DNA from: Bugula neritina
Taxonomy: Eukaryota; Animalia; Bryozoa
Direction of reading: 5' to 3'
Assembly: GCA_964035545.1 (NCBI GenBank)
Contig: OZ037772.1
Span: forward strand, 10,166,818-10,230,817
DNA: 64,000 bases
The translations under genes were made by a program, and so were the position numbers. Positions within the stretch are counted from its first letter, which is position 1, and the number at the start of each line of letters is the position of its first letter. Below, piece after piece: positions 898 through 42,130 of this stretch. Under the pieces are notes generated by a model. The model saw only the letters and a program-made list of their open reading frames with translations. It was not told the DNA's origin and did no database searches.

Positions 898-2918
898 TCA
901 ATTTCTTCCACCAATTAAAGAGAGAGTGACTTATTACTATAGTAAATCTCACCCAAATACATTTATTATTTCTACTGTAGTATTACTTATAAGATGTGAC
1001 CAGCTCCTTGAAGTGTTGCTTGTATATGTTGAGTTAAAAAACATGAATATTGTAGCAGAGGTAGCATGTAACAGTGTTGACTATTAAATAGACAGAACAT
1101 GTCTTCTAATATTTCTATAACTATACTCAGATTGAATATAGTTCCTTCTCACTGCTTAAAGAACTCTGACCTATAATATTATAAGATAACTCACCACAGT
1201 ATATACAACTCTAATCATTAGCAACTATAATATTATTATGCTTTGTACAATGTTTACTATATATAATATAGTAGAGATGGAAGGTTAAAAGAAGCGCATG
1301 CACAAAAGATAATACTAAAGCGTTAAATTTTATATCATATGGTCTGATATATAATATAACATGTCAGTTGGATTGTTGTTGCTGCATGGAAATCAATTTG
1401 AGTTTGTAGAAATGTTTAAAGAGTTTTGGTGAACAGAATGTGAAGGTTGACAAAACTTTATCTGAAACTTGTTTCTTTTGCAAAGCAGACATGCTGTTTT
1501 GGCTTCATCTCTGCTTTTATGTATTATATAAATTTGAATTATAAATAACGATTCCATTACTGAAAAAGAATAATATCTCTGTATGTCAATACTTTGTAGA
1601 TAGAAATTGTTTGCTTTTTCACCAAATGAAGGGTAGTTCAAGTTTGTAGAAATATCATATCTTTTGTAGAATAAGCTTTTTAGTGAAAGTTTTAATTCCA
1701 GCTTATAATAGCACTGAATAGTACGCTGTATAATAAGCTGGAGAAGAGAAAGCAGTTTAGCTGCACTCAAATTATTAGTATGGCAATAATCTCTAGAAAA
1801 AAGCTAGTCATTTGCATTATGATCTTTTTCAGAGTAATAGAAACAGTTTATACTAAATAAAAATTGATTGTTTATGAACTACTAACTAATTCCTATTTGT
1901 AACGTGTCTAATTATAGATGTGTGATATTTTATAGAAGGTGATAATAAAAATACTAAAGGATATTAAAAGTAAAACCGGATATAATTTTGGGATTTCTCT
2001 TTATTAACTGAAGAACCAATTGCCAAATAAAAATCAATCTAATCTTCATTAAATGAGCTGCTTATTGTAAGGGAATAATGTGCTATTTCTTGCTACTGAT
2101 TATAATTTCATACCACAGCTGAAAACAGTTTCACATCATATCATATCTCAACGCAACACAGCAATCTGTATATATTATTAGCAAAATCTGATGCATTAGT
2201 AATTTCTAAGACAGCAAACATAGACACAAATAATTGGGCTTGATATAATTGCAAATAACAAAAGTTTAGTCAAGATAGAAAATAATAGGAAATTGAGTGA
2301 AAATTTTGCAAATTTAAAGTACATAATATATATGTAGCCACCACCAATAAGATTATTATATAAAGTTTACATATTTGTAGAAATAGATTGTGTATAATTG
2401 ATATAACGTCCACTGTGAAGTAGAAAGTTAAACATGCAGACGACTATAGTGAAGTAAACTGACTTAGTTGACTGATTAAAGCAGAGATGTACTGGGAAGG
2501 TAACTCCATATGTATGACTCAACACGTTGTGTTCTACAAAGCATAGCAGAGATGTCTAGTATATACAATATCTGACATGTTATAATAACATAATACTATG
2601 AGACATTAGTATACGTTGTATGCATTGTAAACTGTTGTTTTATAATTTAACTATTGATTGATAACCAATCAGGGGAGATAACTGGTAATAATGTGTACAA
2701 TACTATATAGGTAACCAACAATATTATTATAATACTATAGAGAGTCATAATATTTCTATGCAATAAAAAGCAATTCAACACACAATATTATACAACAAGA
2801 TGCAGTGTAAAACTATTCAATGCAAAGCAGCATTAGAAAGATGAATTAGAAAGGCACTCAGTACCTCTCACAACATTTACTGACCTTTATTAGAGTATCC
2901 CAGTCATTTAGTTCACCT

Positions 2919-5900
2919 TCACTTCAGCTGATAAAACTTAACTTGTCCATTAGAAGAGTGTACTGGAACTACTAGAGTAGAGCCAGTGATGTGGAGATCA
3001 GGTATGTAACTCTTTATAGTAGATATCCTGGTTAGTAACTTGCCTGTAGAGATAAAATTCATAATGTTCTTTTTTAGGAATCAAAGATAATATTAAAAGA
3101 GTGCAGTTTATTTGTAGGAAATATATAAATATGAATGAACTCATTTTATCATATTATAACACATATATTTCATACACTATGTGTATTCTACACAGTAACT
3201 AACCTGTATGTAATGATAGTACACAGAGTGTGATAGGTTCAGCATCATCAGCCACAAGTACAAACTCATCTCTATAGCAGGTCACTCCACAAGGTTCAGC
3301 CACTTCCTTACACTGCCAGATAATGTCACCTGATGTGGTGTCTACTTTGTATACTAGAGATGAGTGATACTGAGATATAATAATTGAGTTATTATCTGCA
3401 GCAGACAGATGTACAGCAGTATCAGTGAGTAGAAGACAGGGTAAAGTGTTTACTACCTCCCCATTCAGAGAGTAGAATACTAGAGTTTTATTCAGCCTGT
3501 CAGGAATAGCTATCTGATTGTTTATGATGGCAAGTTGATTTACCCACTCTGATTTATTATCTGTATGAGTCCAGCTGGTGATGAATCTCCCTTTAAGGTC
3601 ATGAACTCTTACAGTTGAATCAGAAAACAGAGTATATATCCTATCATTATGTACTGAGATACTCATCACATTGCTACCTTTAATAGAGATGAATGATTTA
3701 GTTACTTTGTTGTTCTCATCTATCCTGTGTACACCTTCATAACACCCAGCATATGTGATACCTTTATAGGTGTGAACAGAATAGCAGTGTGGAGAAACTT
3801 TTGCAGTGCTTATCAGTTCCGCAGTCTTGGGTGGTGGAGGTGAGACAACCAGTCCTTGTTCAGGAGTTATACTTGCAGTTCTTTCATTGGTCAGCTCAAT
3901 CTCTGTATCTCTTTTTTCTTCTGTAATAAAAATATTGACATGCATGACATAGTAATATATTATAAAAGCAGCTGATACATCAGAAAAACTAGCAGATATG
4001 TAAACATACATGCATATTTTTGGGCTCCGCTACACAAACAGCAGTGCTAGCAACACTGCAATGATCATGCACTTTTCATTTAAAAATTAATTTTATAAGT
4101 TTGATCTTTTAGACCAAATTATTTTTATGGGAACCAACTATTGAATAAAAATCACTGCAGAAAAAAATCAGCAGCTGTGTTCATGTCAACAAATTATTAA
4201 AATCAATTCTAATGATATTCTATTTAGTGATATACTACTATATTAAATTAGGTTCTGTTCACCAATTAACTTGTATTAGTATTCTCCAAGAGTATAAGCA
4301 CAGCTATTGCACAAGTGTGTAAATCTATATAATGTAGTTGAAAGAAGTATACATATTGGGGGAGATGTAGGCCACTTCCTCCTCAGTGAAAATTAATTAC
4401 TAAAGATTCCCACTAACATTATTTACCATATAACTTGGTTTAATAGGATCTTGTAGGGGTGTAGTGTGGCAATAGTACAAACCCAGTTTTGAAAATAATA
4501 GTGTCTTAATTTAAATCAGTATTTGTAATGTATTTTTATAACACGGATCAATAGAGTGAAATACCAGATGATGAAAAAGTAACAGTTGGCAACATAGCTA
4601 TAGCTTACATACAAATATACCTCAAATTCACAAGTCAAAATATACTTACTTGATCATGTTACCTAATTACGGTTAGATAAAAAACTTCCTAAAGATAAAT
4701 AGGATTATTGAGCCATTCAATATCTTGTTTTAAGTAGTTTTGCATATTGATAGCATAAAAATGACCTTTAACATCTATAAAACTGACCTTTGACCTCTAC
4801 AGATGCTACAAGATCAAAATGTGCCAACTTAGGAATCTCTTCTGTCAACAGTCTATCAATCTCCTTCTTCATGTCACGATATGACTTGATGATGTCAACC
4901 TAACAATATTATATATACACACAATGTGACACTGTGTAGCAGGTGTCTAAGAGTTGTCTGCTATTATAGAGAATGCTAGAATTGAGTATAGACATTGAGA
5001 ACAACAACAATGCTGTGTTTGACACCAACTAAACCATCTAAAAGCAGCATTACAATGCAAAAGATTGCAGGATCGAGAGTGAAAAGCCCAATTCATAGGA
5101 AAAAAAAGCTTCTACAAACTAATTGGCAGACTTTACACTAATTATATGCCCTATAGTATTATACAGTGTGCTATAATATTATACAGTACCCTATGGTATT
5201 ATACAGTGTTCTATAGTATATTATACAGTGTGCTATAGTATTATACAGTGTGCTATGGTATATTATACAGTGTACTATAGTATTATACAGTATCCTATAG
5301 TATTATACAGTATCCTATATATAGTATTATACAGTATATTCCTATATATAGTATTTATACAGTATCCTATAGTATTAAACAGTGTCCTATAGTAGAAAAT
5401 TATTTTAGTTACATTATATCTATTTATATTATTTAAATGATCTATAGATGTTATATAAAATAGTCAAACTGCTACAGATACACACACCATAGCATCTACT
5501 ATCCATACTCTGTAGCTAACCTCATGACTTTGGTCTAACTTAGCCTCTATTCCTTCTCTGTGATTATAAAGCTTACAGTATCTAACCCCCACTTCCTCAC
5601 CATGAAGTTCACTGCTTGACTCTCAGTCTTTTCTCTCTTCTCCACCAGTTCTTTTTCCAGTTTGTCATACTTCTGTTGAATAGCTGCTATCTAAATACAG
5701 TCACATTAAATATAGGAGAAGATAGTTTGGTTTGAGGAGTGTCTGAGTGTATAATCATCTTGCATCTACCAAAAAAGTAGCTTATCTCAGATGATTATAA
5801 AAAAACTATAAACAAACTCTCACAGTTACTATATGATCTTTATAATTATCAAATTTAAAAACCATGTAATAGTCACCTGATCATCACGCTGTTTACATAG

Positions 5901-7351
5901 CATCCCCAGTAACTTTTTGGTTTCAGCTCTAAACTCATCAATGTTTGCAGCTATCTGTTTGTAATATCCAGATAAGTTGTCTTCTCTTGCCTTCAACTTT
6001 GTGACTTCCACTAGCTGCATTGTTAAATCCTTCAATGTCAAGAGTGTATGCTGTGATGTACCTAAAGTAATATATACAAAGTATAATGTATAAGCTGTTG
6101 TGTACCTGAATCATGTAATATATATTGCAAGTAAACAGAAGAATAGACACTTACCATCGACACATACCCCAGCTGTAGGTACACACTGAGTACAGAGTAG
6201 CTTGAGACAGACTTTACAACCCAAAGTATACTCTACGTCTGCATGTGTCTCACACATTCTCTTCTCTAATTTAGCAGCACGAGCTTTATACTCTGTCATA
6301 TTTATTCTAGAATGTTCCTCGGCCAGATTGTCATGGTCCTAAGACAAATATATACAAAAGAGTTTGTGGCTTACTAACGATTTTACATCTAAGATTGCAT
6401 ATAATATACATTATAATGGTCCTAATGTCATGATCATATAATGCCTAAAGTATATATGCAATAGTATACAATTTAAAAATATTTAAAGATATATTGTACA
6501 ATCTATTACAATAAAAGCATGGATGTAAGAAATCAATCTTGAGAGTTATGTCTCCTTGATCATAACTTTTATCTTATGTATAATAAACTACAGCATGCTG
6601 ATCGATAAATTTTAGGAGGTAAAGACACAAAACCAATTCATGTAAGCAAATGAGTGAAAACAAGTGAAACCAAATGAATGTTTTCGATTGATGAATCAAA
6701 TCAAATATTGTAAATAATTTGTTGCAAAGCTGATTAAATTATTTCTCTGCAAAGTATCACCAAAATCTCAAGCTTTCAGTTTCAAAATATCACATATAAA
6801 GATATACACACAGAAAACACGAAAAATAGTGTTAACTTACAATGACATGTTTAGCACAGTACAGTTTGGAACAAACTAAACAATACATCAGAGCAGGTGT
6901 GTTATTAACTCCTGACTTTGTACAGACTTCACAAAGTATAGACTTATCTATCTGTTTCATCTGGTCTGCTGTTGGTAACTTATCAGGTGTTGTATTGAAC
7001 ACTTGTCTGTAACATAAATGATAAATTTATTGTTGATATATCATCAATTAGTTTTATCTTAGAGAACATTTATCAATCAACACTCATAGTATAATTTGCT
7101 CTGTTCCACCTCGTGATATTATATCAACTGTAATATATACTAGACAGCAGACGTAGCGAAAACCACATAGCAAATACTTTGACATAAACTTACCGACATA
7201 TTCCACATTTAAGAGCATTTAGCCTTCCATAAAATTCATTCAAACACTTGTCACAGTGTGGGTGAGTACAAGGCAGTGCCTTAATTTCCTCTAACTTGAG
7301 TTTAGATAAACAAATAGTACATCTCACCATCTGTTGTGGTTTGGATGCCAT
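2919..7351 (-). pseudogene. TRIM-like RING/B-box/B-box/coiled-coil/NHL-like propeller gene, copy 1; frameshifted in exon 5
   Basis: Exons 7351-7194 (C3HC4 RING: CTIC...CTHPHCDKC...CGIC), 7006-6841 (B-box), 6338-6155 (B-box), 6061-5877, 5690-5521, 4899-4788, 3920-3204 and 3043-2919, all GT-AG. Exon 5 is 170 nt versus 171 nt in copies 2 and 3 (ttcctcaccat vs ttcctctaccat), giving a premature TAG at 5547-5549. Confidence 0.85.
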
Positions 7352-7916
7352 TTTGTTCTACAATTACATCATATTAGGACGACACAATCATGTTGATCAC
7401 AATGATTTCAGAGCAGTTATCAATACTTATACAAGTGGATGGCAAGAGAATTAAAAGAAGATTTGGACATTGCCCAAGTTAAAAGAACAGCAAACAATTC
7501 TATCACCAACTATCTGATATTAATATTGAATTATTTACATCTACATCTAGCAAGGGCTGACACTAGACTAGGTAGTAACTTTGCGTTCGAGGCTGTCGTC
7601 ATTTCGACTGTGGTGTTAACCAACTTACAGTTAGTGATTCATTAACGTTCAACCTATTATTGTTAAAGTTAATAATTAATTCATTATGAAAATGACAATA
7701 CCTTTATCGTTCATTTTGATATTAGTTGAGTGAGACTGAGAGCAAGCATTGCAATCTGCCAGTCACAATCACAATGACAATCACAGTGGCAATGATGTAT
7801 TTTTAAAACTAATGACAATCACAATGTGATGGATGATTACAGTTAATGTTATAACCATAATCCTAATAGCTAAAGGTAAAAGTTGAATGTAAATATGGTA
7901 AATTAAAATTGACTCA

Positions 7917-8100
7917 CCAAAAAAGTGTTCACTGAGTGACTCAGGTTCTTCAATTCTAATAGTAATTGTGTTCAATCGAATGGATATGATTGACCTACTT
8001 CTAGTTCTACTCAAAACTGCTTTGCAAGCTGCTGCGAGGAAGTTGAAAATGAAACGGCGCTACAGATGAGTAATAGAAATTTCCCGAGTTGGAAATTTTA
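7917..8100 (-). promoter_or_regulatory. Putative TRIM non-coding first exon and promoter with ISRE-like and kB-like motifs, copy 1
   Basis: Donor GTGAGT at 7916-7911; GAAAATGAAAC at 8045-8055; GGGAAATTTC (minus strand) at 8076-8085; TGACTCA near 7937. Confidence 0.45.
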
Positions 8101-9043
8101 CGTGCTCGTAGATAAAGTCTGCAAAACAGACGTTGCTGAATCATTTGTTTACCGGGAATAATTCCGATGTTACATTAGCCGAAAGCTGTACTGCATTTGA
8201 CGCAACAGCGATGTGAAGAGCAGACTACTCTTACACTACAATTCTCTCTCAATAGCAATAATATAATAACTATTATCCATCAGTTATTAAAAGCTAACAC
8301 ATTTCTTTATTCAAAATCTTAAGCATCCGAAACAAATTGTTTATTACATTGCATTGGTAGCTGCATATCCTAAGAGGAGTAAAATGTTTGGCCAAAAAAG
8401 TCACAAATCTGTGCATTAACCATCTAACACTGACCTGCACCTTTCTCTATTACTACTATGAGTTATACTATATTACAGACTTGAAATAAATTGTAGTCAG
8501 TGGAGTCAGTGAATCATTTCCTTTTATTGGCTTTGCAGAATATTTTCTTGCTTATATCCAATATTTTAGTCACATCAAATGATATAGTATGACTCTAACA
8601 AGTAGCATGTAATGGCGAAGGTATATAGAAGCTTATAAGATTTATATACAGGTATTTTATAGTTGTGTATTTTACTTTTTATATCAAAAGCATATCATGT
8701 AACCTGCCAGTATATTAACATATCCCAATCGTTGTCACATACTGGAGACCATTATAAACCAACAACTAATAAAATGAAACTTGCTTATCATTGTCATTTG
8801 TCATCTTTGACCTAGTTTAAATACAAACCAATCAGAATTGATTTAAATACTGAGATTTATTTACAATAATACAAAAGTCATAAACTCTAAATGATAAAAA
8901 CTATAGTAGGCTATATAATATAACTATAATAAATTATTCAGCACTTTGACACAATGTCCGCTGTGACTTAGTGCACTCTGTTTATCACACTGACTAGGTT
9001 GAGACGGGTACAAGTTACTCGTACAGTACAATACTAGATAGCC

Positions 9044-11032
9044 TCAGCTCCCCTTGGCTACTTTCTTCAACTGGTGCCACCACTCCAAACTCTTATTGTT
9101 GGTATTGAGAGAATGCTGAAGCTCTCTCCAATGTTCAGCTCCTCTCTTGTCACCGTCTGCACTGATGTACACTCTACCAACCACCTGTCAAGTATAAGTG
9201 TCGGTATGTATTCATAGTGTGTGAGCAGGTGCCCAGCAGGTACCATAAAAGGAGTTGACTACAGGACTCCTGCTGATTGTTAGAAACTGAGCAAATTATA
9301 ATTATTAAATGTTTTAATTTCTGAGCATTCCTGTTCAAAATATTTATTATAACCACAAAATTTCTTTCCAAATTTACCAAAATTTTTATAAAAATAAAAT
9401 TTAAACACTAATTATTGTTAAAGTATTATTAAACGAAAGGCAACCGAGCATTATAGCAATATAACTCAAATGTTCAAATGAGTCTAAAGGACTTAAACTC
9501 AGCCTTAACATAGCTCGAGTTTCCAGGTTATGCTATAGAAATGTTGATATATGAAATAATATCTACAGAACAGCGGAACTCCTTGGTAGACGCCCTCACC
9601 TCATAACTACTGATTTTCACTTTACACAAGTCTACGACTATACTCATATCAGCTAGTTTCACGTGTTGAGGCAGAGCTAGAACTATCTCCTGGTTGAAGA
9701 GTGGATTAGTAGTCACTTTGATGTTATCTATAGTACGTTTCTTCTTCAACTTCTTTCCATCTTCTAGCACCGTCACTCTTACCGTTAGGCCTGTAATATT
9801 TTTAAAAATTAAGAGTTTTAGCATCTGATAATCATAAAATATATCATATTCCTATAAAATATATTATATCTCTATAAAAATTAGTCCCTGCCACGCAGGA
9901 GTTGCACCACACAGCTCCGGCTTACAAGTAAGCACGCTACCATCGCACCACAGGGGCTGCTGGGTAAACTCAACAATACGTCCCACCCAGTTCTCTAGAA
10001 ATTTGCTGGCTCTTTTACTACTGCCTTAGACATCTGCCTCCCCCTCTCCACCCCCCCCCCGTCTTTCAATCACCTTGGATTACTATAACTGCTATAAAAC
10101 TTTACGAAATAACATGTAAAACTTTTTCCCCCACTAGGATTTAAACCCAAGACGAGTCCTCCGAGTCGGAAGGAAGTATGCTACCATTGCACCACATGGG
10201 GCTCTCTTTCATTATCCTTTCAAAATTAAACCCTTTTGACACTTAAAAACAATTTCAAAATCTGACTGTTAAACATGGAATATATTATAAAATTTCAAAA
10301 GTTTAATTATCCAATAATTATAAAATATGCATCACTCTTTTTATATGCACTTTAGTGAAAATTGTATATTGTTCACATTAACACAGCTTTTAAAGCATCA
10401 GCTATCTTTGAAGTTGCTTACCCAGTACTGCGATTTCGTCTTCTATGTGTAAATCTTTTGCTTTAGCAAAAAAAAGGTGAGCGTAAGATTATCTTTAGCC
10501 TTTGTGCTCTTCATGGAAAACAGCAGCTCTCCGACATAATTCTAAAGGATAATTTGGAAAACATATATAATACTATTATAAATAAATAAATAAACAAATA
10601 GAGTCCTGTACACATATACACTTTGCAGCTTGCATTTAATATATATTTACATTTCTTTTGCATACATTATAAACACATTTCATCTAACTACATAAAAACA
10701 TATTAATTTATGATGAATGCAACACACAGGTGCATTACATATGCATAATGTAAATACTATAATATTAAATGTTATATTTATAATTATATGTAGTTTTATT
10801 TTATTTACAATACTGTATTCACTGTATACTGTGAATTTTAAATAATGAAATATATTCACCTCTTCATGGTCATGTGACTCAGGTAGACATCTGTCAATGT
10901 GTTTCTCTACGTATAATGACTCATCATGTGGTAGACTATTTAAACGTAGTTGGACAACTCCAACTTTCTCCGTCTTCACAAACTGATCGTAGTCATACAG
11001 GTGACATAACAGATGTTTCCCTGAGAGATCAT
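9044..11032 (-). pseudogene. Synaptotagmin-like C2 gene, 3' half only (end of C2A plus C2B), copy 1
   Basis: Exons 11032-10860 (LYDYDQF..KVG), 10541-10422, 9790-9600 (KKLKKKRT..NPLFNQE) and 9184-9044 (EHWREL...WWHQL*, the synaptotagmin WHxL terminus). No upstream TM or early-C2A exons. A 1-nt deletion in the A-run at ~10468-10475 relative to copies 2 and 3. Confidence 0.8.
9886..10205 (-). mobile_element. Dimeric tRNA-like SINE relic in the synaptotagmin intron (also 54815-55135; collapsed to one unit at 37625-37695)
   Basis: Two tRNA-like heads (TGGTGCRATGGTAGC...GGTGCAACTCC / GGTTTAAATCC). Copy 2 is deleted between the repeated ctaccattgcaccaca. Confidence 0.55.
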
Positions 11033-11171
11033 CTAATTGAATACAGAACACCAGAATATTGCTGTGATTCTAGTAATAATACAGTCGAGTGATAAAAACA
11101 CTCATTTCACAAGCATGTAACAGAAACAAAATTCGACATAATAGGTGGGATGATAGACACCGAATACAGTG

Positions 11172-11326
11172 CACTACTGTACTTACTTGATAAATACTAT
11201 ACCACTGTATTTACTTAGTAAATACTATACCACTGTACTTACTTAGTAAATACTATACCACTGTACTTACTTAGTATATACTATACCACTGTACTTACTT
11301 AGTAAATACTATACCACTGCACTTAC
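11172..11326. repeat. 28-bp minisatellite, ~5.5 units
   Basis: Unit ACTATACCACTGTACTTACTTAGTAAAT, abutting the PTGES2 exon 7 donor. Confidence 0.9.
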
Positions 11327-14261
<2,935 letters not shown>

Positions 14262-14555
14262 CTTTGTTAAATGTACGAATTTGATCAGCTGTAGTAGCCT
14301 TCGCTTGATAAATACTCTACCCTTACAAATTGTGAAGCTGGCTTAGGTGAATATTTAGAGGCAACTTTAGGCTATTTAGAGTACAATAAGGTCGTTTTTA
14401 ACACCAGTATATTAGCAACTAGCCGGTGTCTTTAAAGACGCAAATAGTTCTGAGTTATGTAATACGCGCATTCGTAGAGCATAACTCCTTCTTATTTGCG
14501 CAGAGGCGAGGCGAGTCAAATAGTGCACTAGCTCCGGTGTGATGTAAGATTATCC

Positions 14556-16868
<2,313 letters not shown>

Positions 16869-16876
16869 GATTATCC

Positions 16877-19356
<2,480 letters not shown>

Positions 19357-19854
19357 GATTATCCCAATAAACTAAAACTTCTTTTAGTTGTAATTATCGT
19401 TCAACGATTATACCCTTTGAAGAGCATTCTCCGTAATGATCATAGATCAATAAACACACTAGAATCTCAGATCAAAATAATAATAGCTATAGCTATAATA
19501 GTTTAAGATTTATACTAAAAAACAAGTTTATTCGGTGTATTTTTTATCAGCAACCAGAGAAACTTGATAAAATACATCCAGCTAAATTTGTAGCCCAAGT
19601 TTGATTAATGAAGGATGTCATTAACCCCTGGTGACTTCCAATCTCAATTCACAAAAGAAGCATTAGTATATAAAATTTATAAATAAATGTGTAACTAAAT
19701 TGTGTAAATTAACAAAATTATGGATATACAGAAAAATACACTATATTCAGATTGGAAATGTACAGTTTACAAAAATAGGCTGAGTATTTGTATCATATAT
19801 GCAATGTGCTGAAAATGAGAAATTAAGAAGATATTATATAAGTATAATGAGAGA

Positions 19855-20061
19855 AGGAAGCAAATGTGGTCTAGCAGTTAGAGCGTTTACTTAGTGACAA
19901 ACCCTGACAAAGGCCATTGGAGATGTTAGGAAGAGCATCCAGTCATAAATGCTCCTTTGTCTCATCTGAACAAGTTCTTAGCCGGATTCAACAAAAAAAT
20001 TTCCAGCAGGAGTTTCTCACAGGGATAGCGACTATAAACTTGCGTGAATGAGTTGTTTAAG
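19855..20061 (+). mobile_element. tRNA-derived SINE
   Basis: Box A-like TGGTCTAGCAG, core GGAAGAGCATCCAG, flanking direct repeat taatgagaga. Absent in copies 2 and 3; related copy at ~48870-49050. Confidence 0.7.
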
Positions 20062-20602
20062 TAATGAGAGAGTGCACAATATTCTGTTAGAAGCATGTAA
20101 ATTATAGCCTGAGTTTCAAGTCAACTGGTGAATAGGAAACTAAAATGAGCAGTAATTCTATAGTGAAGGAACAGGTTCAGCCTATGATCCAACCATGCAT
20201 GTAGATAGTTTCTAGAGAAGAGAATTCCTCTAGCATGCCTAAAATTAGTAAATGAAAAGCTACAATAACAACTATACATTGAACGAAATAAGCTAATTTA
20301 CATAAATCAGACTTTGATGTACAGAAAGACTAATAGTAAAACTATATATTACATATACCCCATAATCTACGTCTTATATTTGTTCTTGATTGAAATAATA
20401 TAGACTGAAAGAAAGTATAAGCTGCACAGCATAAATTATCTGACATAATATATATGTCTACTATACGCTACACTACACTGCGCTGTACTGCACTGCACTG
20501 CACTGCACTGCACTACACTGCACTATACCGCACTACACTACACTACACTGCACTGCACTGCACTGCACTACACTGCACTACACGACACTACACTACACTA
20601 CA

Positions 20603-22732: not shown

Positions 22733-25700
22733 TCACTTGAGCTGATAGAACAGAACTCGGTCATTAGGAAAACGTACTTGAATTACTAGAGTAGAGCCAG
22801 TGAGGTGTAGATCAAAAATGTCACTGTACTTAAGAGGTAGCCTGGTTAGTAACTTGCCTGTTGAGATAAAGGACATAATTAATGTTCCTCTATAGGAATC
22901 AAAGATAATATAAAGAGAGTGCATTTTGTTTGTAGGAAATATATAAATTATATGAATGAACTAATTTTCTCAAATAACAATGCAGGTATATTGTAGACTA
23001 TGTGTATTCTACACAGTAACTAACCTGTATGTAATGATAGTACACGGAGTGAGGAAGGTTTAGTATCATCAGCCAGAAGTACAAACTCATCTCTATAGCA
23101 GGTTACTCCACGAGGTGTAGCCACTTCCTCACACTGCCAGATGATGTCACCTGATGAGGTGTCTACTTTGTATACTAGAGATGAGTTAGGTTGAGATATA
23201 ACAATTGAGTTATTATCTGCAGCAGACAGACATACAGGAGTATCAGTAAGTAGAGGACAAGGTAGAGTGTTTACTACCTCCCCAGTCAGAGAGTAGAATA
23301 CTAGAGTCTTATTCAGCCTGTCAGGAATAGCTATCTGATTGTTTATGATGGCAAGCTGATTTATCCACTGGAGTTTATTATCTGTATGAGTCCAGCTGGT
23401 GATGGACTTTCCTTCAAGGTCATGAACTCTCACAGTTGAATCAGAAGACAGAGTATATATCCTATCATTATGTACTGAGATACTCATCACACCTCCATAC
23501 TTATGAATAGAGATGAATGATTTGGTTACTTTGTTGTTTTCATCTATCCTGTGTACACCTCCATCACACCCAGCATATGTGACACCTTTATAGGTGTGAA
23601 AAGAGTAGCAGTATGGAGAAACTTCAACAGCTTTTATCAGTTCTACAGCCTTGGGTAGTGGAGGTGAGAGAACTAGTCCTTGTTCAGGAGTTATACTTGC
23701 TGTTCTTTCATTGGTTAACTCAATCTCGGTATCTCTTTTCTCTTCTGTAATAAAATATTGACATGCATGACATGGTAATATAATATAAAACAGCTGATAC
23801 ATCAGAAAAACTAGCAGATATGTAAACATACATGTATATATTTACACATCACTACACAAACAGCAGTGCTATAGCAACACTGCAATGATCATGCATTTTC
23901 CATTTGAAAATAAATATTATAATTTTGACAGTTTAGACCAGATTATTTTTATGGGAATCAACTATTGAAAAAAATTTACTGCGGAAAAAAATCAGCAGCT
24001 GCATGCATTCATGTCAACAAAATATTAAAGTCAATTCTAATGATATTCTATTTAGTGATATACTACTATATATTAAATTAGGTTATGTTCACCAAAAACT
24101 TGTATTAGTATTCTCCAAGAGTAAGCACAACTATTGCACAAGTGTGTAAATCTATAGAATAGTTGAGAGAAGCTTACAGATGGGGGAGATGTAGGCCACT
24201 CCCTCCTCAGTGTAAATTAAACACTAAAGATTTCCAATAACATCATTTATCTTAAAACATAGTTTAATAGTAGTTTTAGAAAATGTTAGTTCCTTCATCA
24301 TGTTAAGTTAAAATATTAGATATAATATATTGTTATAACACAGGTCAATAGAGAGAAATGCCAGATGAGGAAAATGTAACAGTTAGCAACATATAGCTTA
24401 CACACATAATACACCTTCAATCTAAAAGTCAAAATATTCTTCCGTGATGATTTTACTTATAAATACGGCAAGATACAAAGTGTCATAAAAATGAAAAACT
24501 CTTATAGTTCTATTCAATATCTTTTAAATAATTTTGCATGGATAACATATAAAACCAACCTTTCACTTCCGCAGATGTTACAATACCAAATCGTGTCAAC
24601 TTAGGAATCTCTTCTGTCAACAGTCTATCAATCTCCTTCATATCACGATATGACTTGATAATGTCAACCTAACAATATTACATATACACACAATGTGACA
24701 CTGTGTAGCAGGTGTTATAGAGTTGTCTGCTATTATAGAGAATGCCAGTGTTGAGAATGAACAATGAAATCAACAACAATTCTATATTTGACACACACAA
24801 ATTCATCTAAAAAGCAGCATTGCAATGCAAAAGACTGATGGATCGAGATTGCTATGCCGTATTAGGGAAACAGACTACTGCCAACTATAAAGGGGTAAGG
24901 TTTATTCTAATAAACTGTACCTTAAGGGAGCACAGATTTCAAAGCTGACGCTAATGTGCAGTGGGCTATGCTATTAAATACAGTATCCTAATATAGCATT
25001 ATACAGCATCTTCTAGTATTATACAGTATTGTATAGTATTATACTGCAGTATCCTACTATACCATACAAAGTGCTATAGTATTATACAGTATCATATAGT
25101 GTTATGTAGTGTCCTATGGTACTATACAGTATGCTATGATATTAAAAGTACTATGGTATTATTGTATTATACAGTATCCTACGGTATTATAATACAGTGT
25201 CATATAGTGTTAGTACACTGGGTACCTTGCAGACCGACAGCAAATAAAATGGAATACTCTGGTGACTGGAGGCCACTCAGTAAAACTTAACTTGGGCTGA
25301 GCCACAATGACAGCATTTTTCAAATTAATTCATTCCAAATTCTTATAAATCATTACACAATGAAGTCCCATTAACTACTACAGGCTGCATGTTTTAGCAT
25401 GCATACAAAGATACATGTATTTAAAAAGTATTTTTTCCACTCTAATTTATATATCTGATAGAGCAACATAATTTTATGTTTATGCCTTTGAGGGTGGCAT
25501 AAATGTTGGACAGTCCTGTGTTATACAGCATGATATGTTATAGTACAGTTCCATTACTGCCTCTATTGGTTATTACCTGATCCATTTTCTACTTATGTAC
25601 TCTTTAGATGTTATTTACAGATAGAGAAACAATGAATATAGACTTTATATAAAGACATTGAAATATATAAAACTGTTACAGATCCTAACATCTACTATAT

Positions 25701-27544
25701 ATGCTCTGCAACTAACCTCATGACTTTGGTCTAACTTAGCCTCTATTCCTGTTTTGTGATTATACAGCTCACAGTATCTAGCCCCAACTTTCTCTACCAT
25801 GAAATTCACGGCTTGCCTCTCAGTCTTTTCTCTCTTCTCCACCAGTTCTTTTTCCAGTTTGTCATACTTCTGTTGAATAGCTGCTATCTAAATACAGTCA
25901 CATTAAATGTTAGACAAGCTAGAATAGTTTGAGGAGTGACTGAGTGTATAACCACCTTGCATCTACCAAAAAGTAGCTTATCTCAGATGATTATAAAAAA
26001 GCTATAAACAAACTCTCACAGTTTCTATATGATCTTTATAACTATCAAATTTAAAAACCATGTAATAATCACCTGATCATCACGCTGTTTACATAGCATC
26101 CCCAGTAACTTTTTGGTTTCAGCTCTAAACTCATCAATGTTTGCAGCTATCTGTTTGTAATAACCAGATAAGTTGTCTTCTCTTGTCTTCAACTTTGTGA
26201 CTTCCACTAGCTGCATTGTTAAATCTTTCAATGTCAAAAGTTTATGCTGGGATGTACTTAAAGTAATATATACAAAGTAATGTATAAGCTGTTGTGTACC
26301 TGAATCATGTAATATATATAGCAAGTAAACAGAAGAATAGACACTTACCATCATCACATACACCAGCTGTAGGCACACACTGAGTACAGAATAGTTTGAG
26401 ACAGACTTTACAACCCAAAGTATACTCTACGTCTGCATGTGTCTCACACATTCTCTTCTCTAACTTAGCAGCGCGAGCTATATACTCTGTCATATTTATT
26501 CTAGAATGTTCCTCAGCCAGATTGTCATGGTCCTAAGACAAATATATACAAAAGAGTTTGTGGCTTACTAACGATATTACATCTAAGATTGCATATAATA
26601 TACATTATAATGGTCCTAATGTCATGATCATATAATGCCTAAAGTATATATGCAATAGTATACAATTTAATAATATTCAAAGATATATTGTACAATCTAT
26701 TACAATAAAAGCATGGATGTAAGAAATCAATCTTGAGAGTTATGTCTCCTTGATCATAACTTTTATCTAATGTATAATAAACTACAGCATGCTGATCGAT
26801 AAATGTTAGGAGGTAAAGACTCAAAACCAATTCATGTGAGCAAATGAGTAAAAACAAATGGAAACAAAAAAATGTTTTCAATTGATGAACCAAATCAAAT
26901 ATTGCAAACAATTTGTTGCAAAACCATTAAATTATTTCTCCGCAAAGTATCACCAAAATCTCAAGCTTTTAGTTTCAGAATATCACATGTAAGGATATAT
27001 ACACAGATGACACTAAAAATAGTGTTAACTTACAATGACATGTTTAGCACAGTACAGTTTGGAACAAACTAAACAATACATCAGAGCAGGTGTGTTATTA
27101 ACTCCTGACTTTGTACAGACTTCACAGAGTATAGACTTATCTATCTGTTTCATCTGGTCTGCTGTTGGCAACTTATCAGGTGTTGTATTGAACACTTGTC
27201 TGTAATATAAATGATAAATTTATTGTTGATAGATCATCAATTAGCCACATAGCATACAGTATTTAATATCCTACGTTCATAGCATAATTGGCTCTGTTCC
27301 ACCTTGTGATATTCTATTAACTTTAATATATACTATACAGTAGACGTAGCGAAAACCAAATCACAAATACTTTAACATAAACCTACCGACATATTCCACA
27401 TTTAAGAGCATTCAGCCTTCCATAGAATTCATTCAAACACTTGTCACAGTGTGGGTGAGTACAGGGTAATGCCTTACATTCCTCTAACTTGAGTTTAGAT
27501 AAACAAATAGTACATCTCACCATTTGTTGAGGTTTAGATGCCAT
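22733..27544 (-). CDS. TRIM-like RBCC-NHL gene, copy 2; exon 4 acceptor mutated, possibly non-functional
   Basis: Exons 27544-27387, 27199-27034, 26532-26349, 26257-26073, 25887-25717, 24668-24560, 23744-23025 and 22857-22733. Exon reading frames are open, but the exon 4 acceptor is ttaaG rather than ttagG (position 26258). Confidence 0.8.
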
Positions 27545-28700
27545 TTTGTTCTACAATTACATCATATTAGGACGACATAATCATATTGATTACATTGATT
27601 TCACATCAGTTACCAATACTCATACAAGTGGATAACAAGAGAATTAAAAGAAGATTTGGACATTGCCCAAGTTCCAAGAACAGCAAACAATTCTATCATC
27701 AACTATCTGATATTATTATTGAATTACTTACATCTACATCTAGCAAGGGCTGACACCGGATTTGGTAGTAACTTTGCGTTTGAGGCTGTCGTCATTTCGA
27801 CTGTGGTGTTAACCAACTTACAGTTAGTGAGTCATTAACATCCAACCTATTATTATTACAGTTAATAATTAAATCATAATGAAAATGACAATACTTTTAA
27901 CATTCATTTTGATATTAGTTAAGTGAGACTGAAACCCAGCATCGCAATCTGCCAGTCACAATCACAATGACAATCACAGTGGCAAACAATAAATTCAATC
28001 ATGTGTTTTTAAAACTAAGTCTAATGTCAATGTGATGGATGATTACAGTTAATGTTATACTTTTACTGTTTTAGTTTTAACCATAATCCTAATACTAATA
28101 GTAATAGTGTTGTAATCTTCAGATTTAGGGTTGATATGCTATCCAGAGAGTCTATTTATCTAGTATAGAACTGCACCAGGCTAAGTCGAGTGAACGAGTA
28201 TATTTTATACACAATGATACATTACAAAAACACGATACATTATTTCTAACAAGTTACACATCTAATCTATTTCACACTCTAGCTTCGACTGAGTTAGCAG
28301 CGGGAAACTACAATTGCTGCTAACTATCAACTACGCTAATTGGCTATCCATTGTTCCGGGTCAATTACGCGACCCTACATGTTGTGCTGCTGGTAGTTCC
28401 ACGAACCACCACACCGCCCCCACCAGCAGAAAGCCATCTTTCTGATATATATATAAAAAAAACATTCAATAGTAATTGCATACATCAGTGAACAAAATAA
28501 TACATAATATACAGGAAGAGACATAATAATAGACAGAGTCATTATAACGATCCGTTGCATACAATTGGCCAGCTGTAGATAGACGAGGAATACTAGCTAG
28601 CTGTGGTATTAGACAAGGAATAACCTGTCTAGCAGTTAAGCATTTGCACGATTTTGGTTCCTCACCAAATGTGGAGTTGTGGAGTATTCTGGGTAGCATA

Positions 28701-29522
28701 CTAGAGTCCTTGTTGGGCACGCCGGTGCTTGGCTTGGCATGTACGCAGTTTCCGTTTCATACGGCATACGGATCCCTTCAGCTGGAAGAGTCCTGTGGTA
28801 GTGTTAAGTAGATCTGGCGCCAGCTGGGTGAACTCTTCTTGTAATCGTAGGAGGCGTTCTTCTACTGTAGCTAGTCGTACTGGGTCTGGGGACGGTGTCC
28901 GTCTGCGGCGTAAGGGTGGACTGGGGGACCTGGTCCGTCTCTTCGCCGGGGTAGGGGAGATCTCTCCTTCTTCTGGATATGTAGTTTCCTCGGGGGTGTA
29001 TGTAATTGGAGGGCGGTCAGACACCAGCGGGGATTGTTGGCGGGCGTTGTCTAACACACGTTGGAACCCCGAGGATAGAACGGCTAATAGCATGGCCTTC
29101 TTTACCAGAGGTCGTATATATGTGAGGAACTCCGGGTACAGCTTAGCGTCGACCACATAGTTTTCTCCAGGGAAACAGCCCGCCGCTCTGTGTCTGGTGA
29201 CGGGGTAGGGATACACATCATTGTACCCGCAGGGGCAGAAGGTCAGTAGGAGATGAGCATTGACGTGTAGTTTAAGGGAGCGGTGAGAGGCGCAATCTTC
29301 ACCACAGATCTGGCATCTCGTCCGTCCTCTGGACCCCCAGGCTGTTTCTATTTCTTCTTCGGTTTGTGGAGACACCCACCGCCAACGGCGGCGTAGTGGC
29401 TCAGGCCGGTCACCACTAGCATAGTCCTCCGGATACGGAGCGGGAAGTGTCCTATCTCGTACCCTGGTTGTAGCGGGTCGAGTGTAATCTGAAAAAGTTT
29501 CAACAGTGTTAGTACAGTACAC
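28701..29522 (-). CDS. Gypsy accessory ORF3 (C2H2-type zinc finger, R/S/P-rich patch, coiled coil); not env-like
   Basis: 273-codon sense-strand ORF between pol and the 3' LTR: CQICGEDCASHRSLKLHVNAH, CPCG...VTRH, KRRTRSPSPPLRRRRTPSP. No ATG start; preceded by CTGAC...CAGCAG acceptor-like sequence. Confidence 0.65.
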   Translation of the reverse strand: MYCTNTVETFSDYTRPATTRVRDRTLPAPYPEDYASGDRPEPLRRRWRWVSPQTEEEIETAWGSRGRTRCQICGEDCASHRSLKLHVNAHLLLTFCPCGYNDVYPYPVTRHRAAGCFPGENYVVDAKLYPEFLTYIRPLVKKAMLLAVLSSGFQRVLDNARQQSPLVSDRPPITYTPEETTYPEEGEISPTPAKRRTRSPSPPLRRRRTPSPDPVRLATVEERLLRLQEEFTQLAPDLLNTTTGLFQLKGSVCRMKRKLRTCQAKHRRAQQGL

Positions 29523-29801
29523 TGCTGTGTTGTCAGCTTGAACAGCTTGGCAACTCCTAATTCAGTTACCTCGTAGAGATTAATGATAGTGAATAGTCAG
29601 ATAGAACCGTATTGCAATGAGACTATAAAAATCTCTAAGTCAAACTGAGTTCTTACTACGGTATTTCACTAACCTATCTCCAGCTCGATTGACTCAGTGA
29701 GTCAGAGCTGAGCGATGCAATCTAGTTTCGTATTAAGATATAGTTAACTCACCCCACGATCTGTTGTCGTAAGACATACTGAATGTGTGAAATGGTTTGA
29801 A

Positions 29802-32800
29802 CTACTGCTTAGAAACACGTCTACTCTTGACTGCATCAGCGTATGAAAAGATCGAGCAACGTGGTTGGGGTGCGTGATTAAGACTTTGTGCACCCGGCGG
29901 ATGAATTTTGTTTCTACTTCCGCCGATACAAAAGTTGATATTTCCGTGGTGTTGACAACTCCCACATTTGCTCGATTCTTTTCTCGTACGGTTTTCCCCT
30001 AGACTTTCATGTGTGCCGCTTTTAACGCAGTCACATACGAAGTCCTTCAAGTATGCGGGGGGTTGCCTCGTACGCTGTCCCCTTTCTAGGGGGGGTGACA
30101 CGCTTGCCGGTTCGTTAGTAGGGGCCTCTAATGGCGTCTCTACTTCGCCGTCAGCAGTCACCTCTTCTTGTTCTCCGGATGGAGCCCCTCCCTCCGTGGG
30201 GGTTTGCACTTCCGGAACCGGCTCGGTTTCTGGAAGTGATGGAATTAGACTTGGCGGTGGCGGACACGCTTCTGTTGGTAGAAGCTGCCGCTCCTCTCTC
30301 ACCAAGTTTTCTTCCCGCGGTATGACCACCTCGTATTCAGGTCCATGCCGCCGTCGCCCGCGCGTTGTTGTCTGCCTTCTGGGCTCTAACAACGGGGGGG
30401 GCTTCTCCCACTCCGCCGGGGCTAGCCCAATACGGTTTCAAGCGAGGCTCATTCTGGATAGACACCTGTCCTGAGCGCTCAATCTTGTACGTATGATTGG
30501 GCATAGCCTCGACGACCACGTAGGGGCCTACGAACTTAGGCTTCAGCTTATCAGCCTGTCCGCGGCGCCTACGGTAATTGACCATCCACACCTTATCTCC
30601 TCTTTGATAGAGGGGTGGTTCATCGGAATCTTCGTGCCGCACCTTCCACTGCTGTTGACGCAGTATCTCGTGTGCGGCCTTCATCCGTTCCACTAGTTCA
30701 CTGGCATACTCATGGACTGAGTTATCCTGCTCTGGAACGTGATAGGTGAGATGGTCAGGGACACGAGTCTCTCTCCCGAGCATCAAGAGGTTTGGGGGTC
30801 TCACCAGTACTGGTGTGTGGGGTGCTACGGTATGCACGCATGACTTGCGGCAACACCGTATCCCATTCCTCTTGACCTCGTCCAAGGAGGAGACTCCGGA
30901 GTGCATCACCTAGCATCCGGTTGTTGCGCTCCACCACCCCGTTACCTTGAGGGTGGTAGGGGGTGGTCCTGCTCTGATTTACTCCCCAGAGGTGGCAAAG
31001 GTCGCTCATCAGTTGAGACTGGAATTGAGCGCCTTGATCAGAGTGTATCTGTTCGGGAAGCCCAAAATAACAGAATACATGTTGGTCTAGTGCCCTGGCC
31101 ACTGTTGGGGCTGATGCATCTGGGATAGCCAGAGCATCCGCCCACCTAGTAAAGTGGTCGGTTAGTACTAGGATCCAATTATTGCCTCTGGGGGTCAGGG
31201 GCATGGGTCCGACCAGGTCTACAGCGACTACTTGCCAGGGCCTGCCAGCATATAGCCTCCGCCGTCCTGCTTCACCAGGGGGGCGGCTATGCTTACTGGC
31301 CTGGCAGATCTCACACTGTTTGACTCTGAGCCGGACGTCACGCTCCATCTGCGGCCAATACCACCGGAGTCGTAATTTGGACATCACTCGCTTGACCCCT
31401 GCGTGGGCCTGCTTGTGAGTATCCCAAATCAACTCACGGCGGATGGCTGTGGGGCAGACTACCCTCTTCCTTTCCGGGTGTCTGCCGCTGGCAGCTAGAG
31501 AGATGGTTAGCAACCCATCCTGCCCGATCCGCAGCGAGTCCCAACGCTGACAGTATAGCCGGAACTCGGCGCATCCCTGTCTTATGCGTTCCTCGCTGGG
31601 TCGTCGCCCTTCCCGTTTGGCCCGGTATATGTCTGCTACGACTCCCGGCAGCTCTTCTTGGAGCTTCTTCAGCTCTCGAACATTACCGGCCAGTACAGGG
31701 TTGGCGCGGAGGTTTTGCACATCCTCCGGGGGCTCGTCAACTCTTTGCCTGAGTTGACCTTGATCCCAGTCAAACGGTGCTCCGTGATGAGCCAGCGTCT
31801 CCAACTCGCATCGTGGGGGACCTCCGTCCCTCCTCTCGATGTTGAGACACTGTTTGCAACCTCCGTCAGGTCGGCGACTCAGCCCATCCGCATTGCTGTG
31901 TCTCTTGCCCGGTCGATGTTCGATCCGGTATGAGAATTCAGCTAGGATTTCGAGCCACCGGGCGACCTGACTAGAGGGCTCTGCTCTCCTGCACAACCAG
32001 ATCAGCGAGGCATGATCCGTACGCAGCCGGAACTTCCTGCCATATAGGTATGGTCTGAAGTGCTTCACTGACTTGATTACTGCCAGCAGTTCCTTGCGGG
32101 TAGTGCAGTAATTTCGTTCAGCGGGAGAGAGAGACTTGCTGTAGTAGGCTACTACTACTTCTCGGCCTTCCTGCACTTGTGACAGCACAGCGCCAACATT
32201 CTGGTCACTGGCGTCCGTGTCTAGGATGTACTCCAGAGTGGGGTCTGGGTAGGCCAAGATGGGCGCCGTTAGGAGGCAGCCCTTGAGGCGGTCGAACGCT
32301 TCTTGTTCGATTGGGGTCCACTGCCACGTCACTCCCTTTGCGGTAAGCCGGTTTAACGGCTGGGCTATGCCCGCAAAGTCTGGTATGTATTGCCTGTAAT
32401 ACCCTACCAGCCCCAAGAAAGCCCGGAGTCCGGTCAAGTCTTGGGGGGTGACCCAGTCTTCTACTGCCTGTACCTTTTCGGGATCCGTTGCCACGCCGTT
32501 TCGACCGACAACGTGCCCCAGGTACTTGACCTCCGGCTGCAACAGAGCGCACTTGGAAGGTTTGAGCTTAAGACCGGCACCTCGGAGTCTCTCGAAAACC
32601 TCCTGCAGACGACTGACATGTGTCTCGAAGTCTGGGGAGATTACGATGACATCATCGAGGTAGACCAGCAGTGTCTTCCAATGGAGTCCGCTAAGGACTT
32701 GTTCCATCAGCCTCTGGAAGGTGGCTGGGGCGGAGGTTAACCCGAAGGGCAGCACCTTCCACTTCCACAAACCGTCCCGTGTGATAAACGCCGCTTTCTC

Positions 32801-34432
32801 TTGGGCGTCGGGACTCAGAGGAACCTGCCAATAGCCGCTTAGCAAGTCTAGTGTACTGAAGTACTTGCTGCCGGCTAGGGCGTCCAATGACTCGTCAATA
32901 CGAGGTAGAGGGTAGGCGTCCTGTATGGTTACGCTATTGAGTTTGCGGTAGTCCACACAGAACCACCAACTGCCGTCTTTCTTCCGGACCAGTACGACTG
33001 GCGAGCTCCACGCGCTATGGGCGGGCTCTATCAGTCCCCGGTCCAGAAGATCCCGTACTTGTCGGCTAACCTCCTTCTCTTTCTCCGGCCCCAGCCTGCG
33101 TGTGGGCTGCCGGACAGGGACTGTCCCTGCAGTCAGCGGTATTTCGTGTTTGACAATTCCAGTCAGTCCCACGTCATGCTCTCCGCTGCTGAACACATCA
33201 CCGTAGTCGCGTAGTAACTTGGCCATAGCCTGGCGCTCTCTGTTACTCGCGCAGCCGTTACTGGCCGTCTCGTATAACTCCCGGAGATGTGTTGGGACTG
33301 CCCCTCGTCCCTGAATAGGGTGTCGAGGGAGTGCCTCTGTCGCATCACCCAGCGACGGGCCTACGTCTCCCTCTTGAACAGAGTGAAAACGGCCCAGCAT
33401 CGACCCAGCCGGGAGCTTGATAGGCTCGGTAAAGGGGTTGACGCACTGCACTAAGATCTCCCCTTGCTCAGTCAGCTGATTCAGACTGCTGGCAAGTTGG
33501 ATCTTTTCGTGCGCGCCTTCAACCACCCCGAGTCCAGAGATCCGGCTACTATTCACCCTGCAGTGAATGGTAGCCCGGGAGCGGCCTGGTATGGTACGGT
33601 TGCGTACCACTTGCACACCTCCCACTAAAGGGCAGCCGAACTTGTCGACGCAGGCGAGTTCCCGCCCGGACATCATCATTGCAGATCTGCTAAAATCTAT
33701 GTGACATCCGTGCCGTTTAAGGAACGGCATCCCGAAGATAGCATCCTCCTTGAGCTGACTGACGATGAACGTCTCTTGGATCGTTTGATCGCGGACTCGT
33801 CCCGTCAGCTCAATTATACCATAGAAGGGAAGGCACGACCCGTCAGCTAGGGTGCCGTATTCCCCTTCGTATGCTTCCATCTCGCCCCTGACCCTAGCAC
33901 TGAGGGTGTCGAAGAGTTGGCGGCTTAAGAGGTTTGTGGTACAGCCCGAATCAATGAGAAAAGTAACAGCTTTGCCTTCCAGTTTACCGGGCAAGAAATA
34001 GCTGTTCCCATGGGGCTGCACCTGAACTCTCCCTTCAGGCCTTACTCTCGCAGGGAGTACCTCCCTCGCTTTGGGTCGCGAAGGAGGTCTTTTGGGGCGG
34101 TGATAGGTAGGCCTCGGGGGTGCCGAGGCTAGATTCTCAGCTACCTTTGTGTGCTCCCATCCAGATTCTTGGACTTGTAGCCCTGTGAATCTGTTGTGAA
34201 GGGGCATAGAAAAGGCAGCTGCGGGGCGAAGCCCTTTGCTGGTCCGTCGTGGCTGTTGCCACTGTTGGTTGCCAGTACGCGGTACCCGTCTGGGTGACCT
34301 GCGTTTCTTCTTCCCTAGAGGTTTCGTCGGCCCGCGGAAGGTGGGAACATCTGCGGGCCGCGGTAGTTTAACCCCTGATTTAGGAAGGGACAATATCGGC
34401 GGAAATGTCCTTGATTTCCGCACTCCCAGCAA
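29802..34432 (-). CDS. pol: Gypsy Pol (protease, RT, RNase H, integrase); integrase C-terminus broken by two frameshifts
   Basis: LIDSG protease, YLDD RT, TDAS RNase H, HHCC plus DDE integrase in ORF 30755-34432. GPY/F module in ORF 30337-30909. Tail RTRQPPAYLKDF in ORF 29802-30392. Confidence 0.93.
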
Positions 34433-35272
34433 AAACTGACCGTTTCTCCCTGTGGCGGCGCCGATGGCCGCATGGGCTCAGGGGCGGTACTCACTGGGTT
34501 TTGTGGCGTCAGTGTTGCTATCAGCTTGGCTAGCATGTCCGTCAGTTGAGTGACTTTTGGTGCCGTCGCCAACTGGGACACGGCAGCCGCGGCGGGGGTT
34601 TCCTCCCCTTGTCCCGCGGCCGTGTCTGCGCGGTCTATCTCCACTTGGCGGGAGCTTCCGCGACTTATGCATTTGGTTAGCTAGGAGGTAAGCTTCCCCC
34701 TCAGTCAGAGCATCTTCAACGGTGGTGACTCCCCTAGCTAGAAACTGGTGGTGGAGACCCAGATCGTCGACAGATGCTATGAAAGCGTCGAGGGTGTACC
34801 TCTCGCGGTTGACTGGGGGCAAGTCGCTGTACGCGATCTGTGCCAGCTTCATGACCGCGGCGGCATGCTCCCGCAGCGGGGTGCGGGGATCACGCCGCAA
34901 CCTCTGTAATCGGGCCCTGGCATCTGTAGCCGAGAGGCCAAAGCGGGCCCGCAGAGAAGCAAAGATATTATCAATGTCTACGCCCAGCCCATAGGGCTTG
35001 GCTTTGTCCATCAATGCCATTCTAAGCTTCAGCAGGGCCACCCTAGGGGGCCACTGAGCGACGTCCATTACGTCGCTAAACTCTTGAATAAATTGTTCCA
35101 CCTCCTCTTCACCCGTGAAGGTGGGCGCCTTTAACCTGTAGCGGTCTTCAGCTAGTTCTCGCGGAACCCTTCGCTCTTCTACTACATGGTTAACAGGCAT
35201 TGTCTCTACAGCATTGTCTCTACGCTCACCTTCGATTGCCGGTGGTTGAGTTTCAGCATTTTCAGTCTCCAT
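34315..35272 (-). CDS. gag: Gypsy Gag, split by a frameshift near 34650, with C-terminal CCHC zinc knuckle
   Basis: ORF 34478-35272 (APTFTGEEEVEQF capsid-like) continues in ORF 34315-34644, which contains CWECGNQGHFRRYC. Confidence 0.85.
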
Positions 35273-35669
35273 CTTGGATGCACTATCCCACTGCTGCCAC
35301 CACTGTTGTAATCTTCAGATTTAGGGTTGATATGCTATCCAGAGAGTCTATTTATCTAGTATAGAACTGCACCAGGCTAAGTCGAGTGAACGAGTATATT
35401 TTATACACAATGATACATTACAAAAACACGATACATTATTTCTAACAGGTTACACATCTAATCTATTTCACACTCTAGCTTCGACTGAGTTAGCAGCGGG
35501 AAACTACAATTGCTGCTAACTATCAACTACGCTAATTGGCTATCCATTGTTCCGGGTCAATTACGCGACCCTACATGTTGTGCTGCTGGTAGTTCCACGA
35601 ACCACCACACCAGTAATAGTAAAAGTAGAAGTTGAATATCAATAATATGGTAAATTAAAATTGGCTCAC

Positions 35670-39139: not shown

Positions 39140-42130
<2,991 letters not shown>

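Follow-up and report, generated by a model that had tools for sequence, protein, structure and literature searches.

The locus studied here raises the question of how the first seven exons of a PTGES2 gene came to stand directly in front of the mid-C2A exons of a synaptotagmin, on the same strand and three times over within the window (the whole 64-kb stretch of DNA that was analysed). An earlier note had taken the joint at 11033-11326 for the breakpoint of one duplication, re-amplified later, with the two half-genes as passengers of a TRIM gene. We put at about 65% the probability that the joint is a founding tandem-duplication breakpoint which was re-amplified together with TRIM and is now an intron, in a locus that was kept by selection.

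A tandem array of a TRIM gene and two half-genes

Self-comparison of the window revealed three collinear tandem units, A (approximately positions 2000-20600), B (approximately 21364-43423) and C (approximately 45485-60583), each of about 15-17 kb without insertions and with all their genes on the minus strand. Since positions 1-692 match 61625-62321, the array extends past both ends of the window. The units differ from each other by 6-9%, as well as in their transposon insertions and minisatellite lengths, and the spacing from junction to junction is 27.5 kb between A and B (about 15 kb once two inserts are subtracted) and 17.4 kb between B and C. The closest public proteins to the window are Bugula neritina entries named Su(P), which is the fly name for PTGES2, and this assigns the window to that bryozoan or to a close relative. 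Several cryptic species go under the name B. neritina (PMC11480708).

Two of the units carry large insertions of their own. An AT-rich palindromic insert of 4.8 kb (14548-19364; 13-17% GC, TA-rich repeats) is found in unit A only, where about 300 bp separate it from the PTGES2 start codon downstream. A 7.5-kb LTR retroelement (28059-35614; GC 50-57%) lies in unit B, about 500 bp ahead of the RING exon of TRIM; its restriction to this unit and the 99.7% identity of its direct repeats of 308 bp (28108-28415 and 35304-35611) mark it as a young insertion.

The whole gene of each unit is of the TRIM type and is located at 3202-7357 in unit A, 23023-27550 in unit B and 46353-52286 in unit C, always on the minus strand. 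Those of its exon frames that were found, for a RING, two B-boxes, a coiled coil and a beta-propeller, are open in every unit. In scans of single exons, zf-RING_2 and zf-B_box remained below threshold (26.5 bits against a cut-off of 27.3, and 21.5 against 24.1, respectively), with the two matches standing in the expected order and followed by the coiled-coil-like exon. The RING and B-box exons share 90-100% amino acid identity between units, whereas the propeller exons (3202-4029, 23023-23832 and 46353-47168) are far more divergent, with 76-81%.

Exon borders of the half-genes were taken from splice joints in RNA contigs of four public runs, placed on positions 9000-14400, where CT..AC on the plus strand corresponds to GT..AG on the gene strand. 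The 5′ half of PTGES2 in unit A (11327-14261, minus strand) was identified by these joints, by Pfam (Glutaredoxin/GST_N), by tblastn with a bryozoan orthologue and by translation, and it consists of exons 1 to 7 at 14261-13719, 13281-13156, 13073-12984, 12429-12303, 12187-12091, 11760-11670 and 11448-11327. It covers 398 codons in an intact frame and includes the exon with the glutaredoxin-like CPFC motif, the glutaredoxin/GST-N fold being placed by Pfam in exon 2. The corresponding seven exons span 39140-42130 in unit B, where the frame is also intact, and 56350-59247 in unit C, where exon 1 contains an in-frame stop codon (both on the minus strand). In one of the runs (X7), a joint from 11760 to 12303 skips exon 5 and connects exon 4 to exon 6.

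That PTGES2 stops after exon 7, as the earlier note had stated, was borne out by the tblastn comparison with the Watersipora protein (P0004, 414 amino acids), in which each unit was matched over residues 1-327 only; exons 8 and 9 were found nowhere in the 64-kb window. Like PTGES2/mPGES-2 of known structure (1z9h, 2pbj), the array copies have the N-terminal anchor region, the CPFC glutaredoxin-like domain and the start of the helical domain, but they stop near chain residue 210 of 290 of the solved mPGES-2 (1z9h), without the last 80 or so residues of the solved domain. Taken as PTGES2 proteins, they thus have the glutaredoxin domain and lack the C-terminal 80-90 residues, which belong to exons 8 and 9.

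Downstream on the same strand, the synaptotagmin-type half of unit A (9037-11032) is composed of four exons, S1 to S4, placed by RNA joints at 11032-10860, 10541-10421, 9789-9597 and 9181 to about 9037, and contains the second part of C2A, the whole of C2B and the native stop. Exon S2 of this unit is short of one base, which causes a frameshift; the RNA contigs have the extra base at 10467/10470. The native frame is intact in the S1-S4 exons of unit B (36794-38537) and unit C (53977-55971), which are likewise on the minus strand. The assignment of S1 to the middle of C2A agrees with its alignment to positions 82-115 of the 131-residue C2A chain of a synaptotagmin (8fam) and to positions 54-96 of the 104 of the Pfam C2 profile. 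A 'synaptotagmin-7-like' protein of Watersipora (P0040, 505 amino acids) was matched in each unit over residues 297-500 only, and nothing equivalent to its residues 1-296 was detected anywhere in the 64-kb window. Exons S1-S4 thus share with this protein and with the C2A/C2B structures of synaptotagmin-1 the last part of C2A, the whole C2B domain and the C-terminus; the unit has no transmembrane region, no linker and none of the first 60% or so of C2A, and so falls short of a synaptotagmin with a membrane anchor and two complete C2 domains.

The intron between S2 and S3 harbours an element of about 380 bp in units A (9860-10240) and C (54785-55170) that is largely missing in unit B (37598-37741). 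In a metatranscriptome run, the copy at 9860-10240 reached a depth of up to about 35,000 with many different loose ends, and it is therefore probably a dispersed repeat; its identification as a tRNA gene was rejected because ARAGORN finds none there.

The joint and its parent genes

RNA contigs of two runs (X8 and X7) contain a joint from 11327 to 11032 with GT..AG ends that splices exon 7 of PTGES2 to S1, from which it follows that 11033-11326 functions as an intron with these ends in a chimeric transcript. The depth at this joint was 14 in run X8, compared to 47 at the joint between exons 6 and 7, and 202 compared to 386 in run X7. Transcription and splicing across the joint are thus documented in both runs by contigs that carry variants of the draft-assembly copies and of the complete gene, and not those of units A, B and C.

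In unit A, this intron (11033-11326, minus strand) is made up of 5.5 copies of a 28-bp minisatellite (11176-11326) and a remnant of 143 bp (11033-11175) that extends up to the S1 acceptor. As the earlier note had reported, the junction recurs at 38538-39139 in unit B and 55972-56349 in unit C (minus strand in each case), with 16.6 and 8.6 minisatellite copies that span 38677-39141 and 56111-56351, respectively. Within the window, the 143-bp sequence is present at these three junctions only, and it is all that is left of a synaptotagmin intron, namely its 3′ end. The minisatellite changes into this remnant at the identical base in units A, B and C and in a contig (L005) of an independent B. neritina draft assembly (GCA_010799875.2), as expected if all these copies go back to a single joint; in another copy of that draft (contig L006), a secondary deletion took out exon 7 and the joint. 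Every 28-bp unit of the minisatellite, whose copy number is different in each array unit, repeats the motif of the exon 7 donor (AAGTAAGT), and the intron therefore opens with 5 to 22 donor-like sites in a row.

A further contig of the draft assembly (L003) contains a complete PTGES2 with nine coding exons, where exons 8 and 9 correspond to residues 327-406. Upstream of this gene lie the TRIM and spacer of the array, collinear and with about 88% identity. After the donor of exon 7, about 22 copies of the same 28-bp minisatellite (11871-12487 of the contig) are followed by 130 bp of unrelated intron and by exon 8, and the contig ends 300 bp beyond exon 9. Because the complete PTGES2 has this minisatellite right after exon 7, alignment of the junction to the parental intron 7 places the PTGES2-side breakpoint inside the minisatellite, at 11175|11176 of the window. 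Of the ancestral order put forward in the earlier note (synaptotagmin, TRIM, PTGES2), this contig fits the TRIM-PTGES2 part through its upstream TRIM and spacer and its minisatellite after exon 7; the placement of synaptotagmin before TRIM stays a proposal.

Loose ends in the RNA contigs indicated that exon 7 is also joined to a further exon (...KRKYGLEDDVRQS) and S1 to an upstream exon (...FEESFLFETE). Neither of the two 30-base loose ends occurs in the window with 7 mismatches allowed, and these connections, from exon 7 to exon 8 and from an upstream exon to S1, mean that a complete PTGES2 and a complete synaptotagmin are expressed. The complete PTGES2 is seen as DNA of the draft assembly, and the complete synaptotagmin as RNA loose ends. 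Neither the beginning of the genuine PTGES2 exon 8 nor the S1 peptide was matched in scans of metagenome contigs, and a large profile search with S1 returned the Watersipora orthologue and no complete Bugula synaptotagmin. Watersipora is of no help as an outgroup for gene order: its PTGES2 locus has no synaptotagmin or TRIM within 10 kb, and its synaptotagmin is on a contig of equal length.

The draft assembly was built from raw PacBio reads and polished once, and its one-base indels are unreliable; an example is a one-base insertion in exon 2 of its complete PTGES2 (positions 10037-10041 of contig L003). In the database, these loci are represented by truncated or chimeric Su(P) models from this draft (241, 246, 541 and 580 residues), and users of the annotation should be warned that those of 541 and 580 residues are PTGES2::synaptotagmin chimeras.

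Conservation and reading frames of the half-genes

We compared the sequences of units A, B and C, taking the neutral expectation (27% synonymous changes) from the substitution spectrum of the introns. In introns, 313 of 2782 aligned columns vary (11.3%), with 9.7% at 11-40 nt from the exon borders, whereas variability in exons is four times lower: 19 of 653 sites (2.9%) in PTGES2 exons 2-7 and 16 of 631 (2.5%) in S1-S4. The changes in PTGES2 exons 2-7 are 16 synonymous and 3 nonsynonymous (P = 3e-7), with 16 of the 19 variable sites at codon position 3, and those in S1-S4 are 11 synonymous and 5 nonsynonymous (P = 6e-4). Pairwise omega ranges from 0.02 to 0.10 for PTGES2 and from 0.11 to 0.13 for the synaptotagmin half, values that are obtained in the native frames and in no other, with a synonymous divergence of 0.055-0.096 that equals the divergence of introns. 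PTGES2 exon 1, in which conservation is poor even from one bryozoan to another, showed an omega near 0.55.

A similar picture was obtained with sequences from outside the window. Against the complete PTGES2, the ratios of synonymous to nonsynonymous changes in the three window copies are 19:0, 21:2 and 17:1. When two chimeric copies of the draft were added, synonymous divergence in the synaptotagmin half of the resulting five copies rose to up to 0.2, with no more than 5 amino acid differences in 210 residues. Of the marks of a neutral pseudogene, changes spread evenly over codon positions, an omega near 1 and a divergence at the level of introns were not found in the half-genes. Given that coding-type conservation is confined to exons while synonymous divergence is neutral, we read these patterns as purifying selection on the chimeric copies during most of their history. 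This comparison of sequences leads us to infer that the chimeric locus was kept by selection for most of that time and was not an inert passenger, which departs from the role that the earlier note had assigned to the half-genes.

Changes private to a single copy (18 synonymous, 15 nonsynonymous) are less biased than shared ones (32:1), so that constraint may have relaxed recently, and some chimeric copies may be decaying now. In addition, the closest pair of units changes from one segment to another and site patterns conflict, both of which, judged from the alignments, fit an exchange between units.

Despite this conservation, none of the three window copies keeps the reading frame across the splice from exon 7 to S1: exon 7 breaks off two bases into a codon, and S1 in turn opens with a codon that lacks just its first base (phase 2 onto phase 1). 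The message consequently encodes PTGES2 minus about its last 90 residues, with the frame ending in ...RLKRK and a stop at the joint in unit A, and 11 codons later in units B and C. There are lesions besides in two of the copies, the S2 frameshift in A and the exon 1 stop in C, and unit B is intact in both halves. In the synaptotagmin frame, no start codon was found upstream of C2B, which leaves this half without a usable start of its own. This, the out-of-frame joint in every window copy, the two lesions, the weaker bias of private changes and the RNA variants, which are not those of units A, B and C, count against our main explanation.

Several routes by which the two halves could be read in one frame were considered. 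Skipping of exon 5 as a frame rescue was rejected, as it runs into stop codons in all three units, and so were later donors inside the minisatellite, which lie behind an in-frame TAA. Among canonical combinations, exon 4 to S1 alone stays in frame in every copy, and this splice is absent from the joints listed in the RNA contigs. In draft contig L005, exon 7 ends in AAA instead of AAAA, which puts exon 7 and S1 in frame and is the basis of the 541-residue model (P0045); we give it little weight because the draft was polished once and has other one-base indels, including one in the complete gene.

Origin of the joint

Our explanation starts from an ancestral order, along the gene strand, of a synaptotagmin-like gene, TRIM and PTGES2. 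A duplication would have started inside an intron of synaptotagmin, 143 bp ahead of S1 with its mid-C2A start, and ended in the 28-bp minisatellite found from the donor of PTGES2 intron 7 onward. Placed head to tail, the two copies would create the adjacency of PTGES2 exons 1-7 with S1-S4, and unequal exchange between units would then copy the joint together with TRIM, while the joint itself would turn into an intron across which exon 7 is spliced to S1. If one duplication was followed by re-amplification, all copies should share a breakpoint and a complete gene should resemble a terminal unit, as is observed, and the identical base in units A, B, C and L005 agrees with the proposal of a single founding junction that connects intron 7 of PTGES2 with an intron of synaptotagmin. 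The same holds for the absence from the 64 kb of PTGES2 exons 8-9 and of the 5′ exons of synaptotagmin, whose presence inside the unit would have spoken against that proposal. The reading of the joint as a duplication breakpoint is well supported on the PTGES2 side and, overall, plausible.

Chimeric genes formed by tandem duplication have been documented in population surveys of Drosophila yakuba and D. simulans (PMC4069613, PMC4503668, PMC5460883). As in those cases, the promoter-bearing 5′ part of one gene stands head to tail with the 3′ part of a neighbour on the same strand, which is the novel adjacency expected of such chimeras, and transcription crosses the joint. In the Drosophila chimeras, the genes in between are duplicated whole and complete parents are located at the flanks; in the Bugula array, it is TRIM that lies in between. 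The Bugula joint differs from them in being old (synonymous divergence between copies of 0.05-0.2) and re-amplified into arrays, and also in lying inside a minisatellite and out of frame, although both halves look constrained.

The most serious rival is that the half-genes are inert passengers of TRIM amplification, conserved as a by-product of exchange with functional parents. The out-of-frame joint of all window copies, the lesions in A and C, the weaker bias of private changes and the exchange between units revealed by conflicting site patterns and segment-wise shifts of the closest pair are all in keeping with it. We nevertheless regard it as unlikely, since variability falls in the exons alone, and does so sharply (to 2.5-2.9%, from 9.7% at 11-40 nt into the introns), whereas conversion tracts would ignore exon borders; for this same reason, conversion by the parents was judged an unlikely cause of the conservation. 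Moreover, the exons were not simply overwritten, because their synonymous divergence equals that of introns, and copies that branched off one parent lineage would have spent at least half of their path under neutrality, which implies an omega of at least 0.5, compared to the 0.02-0.13 observed. Inertness was also what the earlier note had supposed, and on this point it fails on the low omega in native frames and on the fourfold difference between exons and introns.

The two remaining rivals concern the joint itself. A deletion between neighbouring PTGES2 and synaptotagmin genes, with TRIM and the fusion unit amplified afterwards, would yield the same adjacency of a 5′ PTGES2 part and a 3′ synaptotagmin part on one strand, and it gains some room from the end of contig L003 at 300 bp after exon 9, which keeps the DNA downstream of the complete PTGES2 out of view. 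Nonetheless, it appears very improbable: the array's TRIM and spacer directly upstream of the complete PTGES2 (about 88% identity) are predicted for the terminal unit of a duplication and are left unexplained by a deletion, and both complete genes are still expressed. That the repeated joint is an artefact of assembly, from a collapsed or mis-joined repeat, is scarcely credible. Tandem arrays are hard to assemble, and beyond this no specific support for an artefact was found; the three copies differ by 6-9% and have different transposon insertions and minisatellite lengths, and the same joint appears in RNA contigs and in an independent assembly made from other data.

A more far-reaching version of the founding duplication is that the PTGES2::synaptotagmin locus is a selected multi-copy new gene, co-amplified in a cassette of two genes with TRIM and producing a shortened PTGES2 and an in-frame, membrane-anchored glutaredoxin-C2 fusion. 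We advance it tentatively, as a possibility at odds well short of even. The fusion would be made through exon 4-S1 splicing or from copies whose exon 7 is one base shorter.

Under the founding-duplication reading, the locus shows cleanly how a chimeric gene arises from a single tandem duplication, its joint being carried along afterwards as an immune-type TRIM array expands; what is unexpected is that fragments joined out of frame both still evolve like coding sequence. If the conservation holds genome-wide, the array is more than TRIM plus junk and becomes a case for how partial-gene duplicates persist, and the birth of a glutaredoxin-C2 fusion would be directly testable.

Other minisatellites are scattered in each unit (591-896, 5150-5394, 20464-20602, 43319-43423 and 60450-60937) and are built of related short motifs (CACTG, ACTAT, TATAGTATTATACAGTG). 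A possible guide of the founding exchange would be repeats of this kind in the two parent introns.
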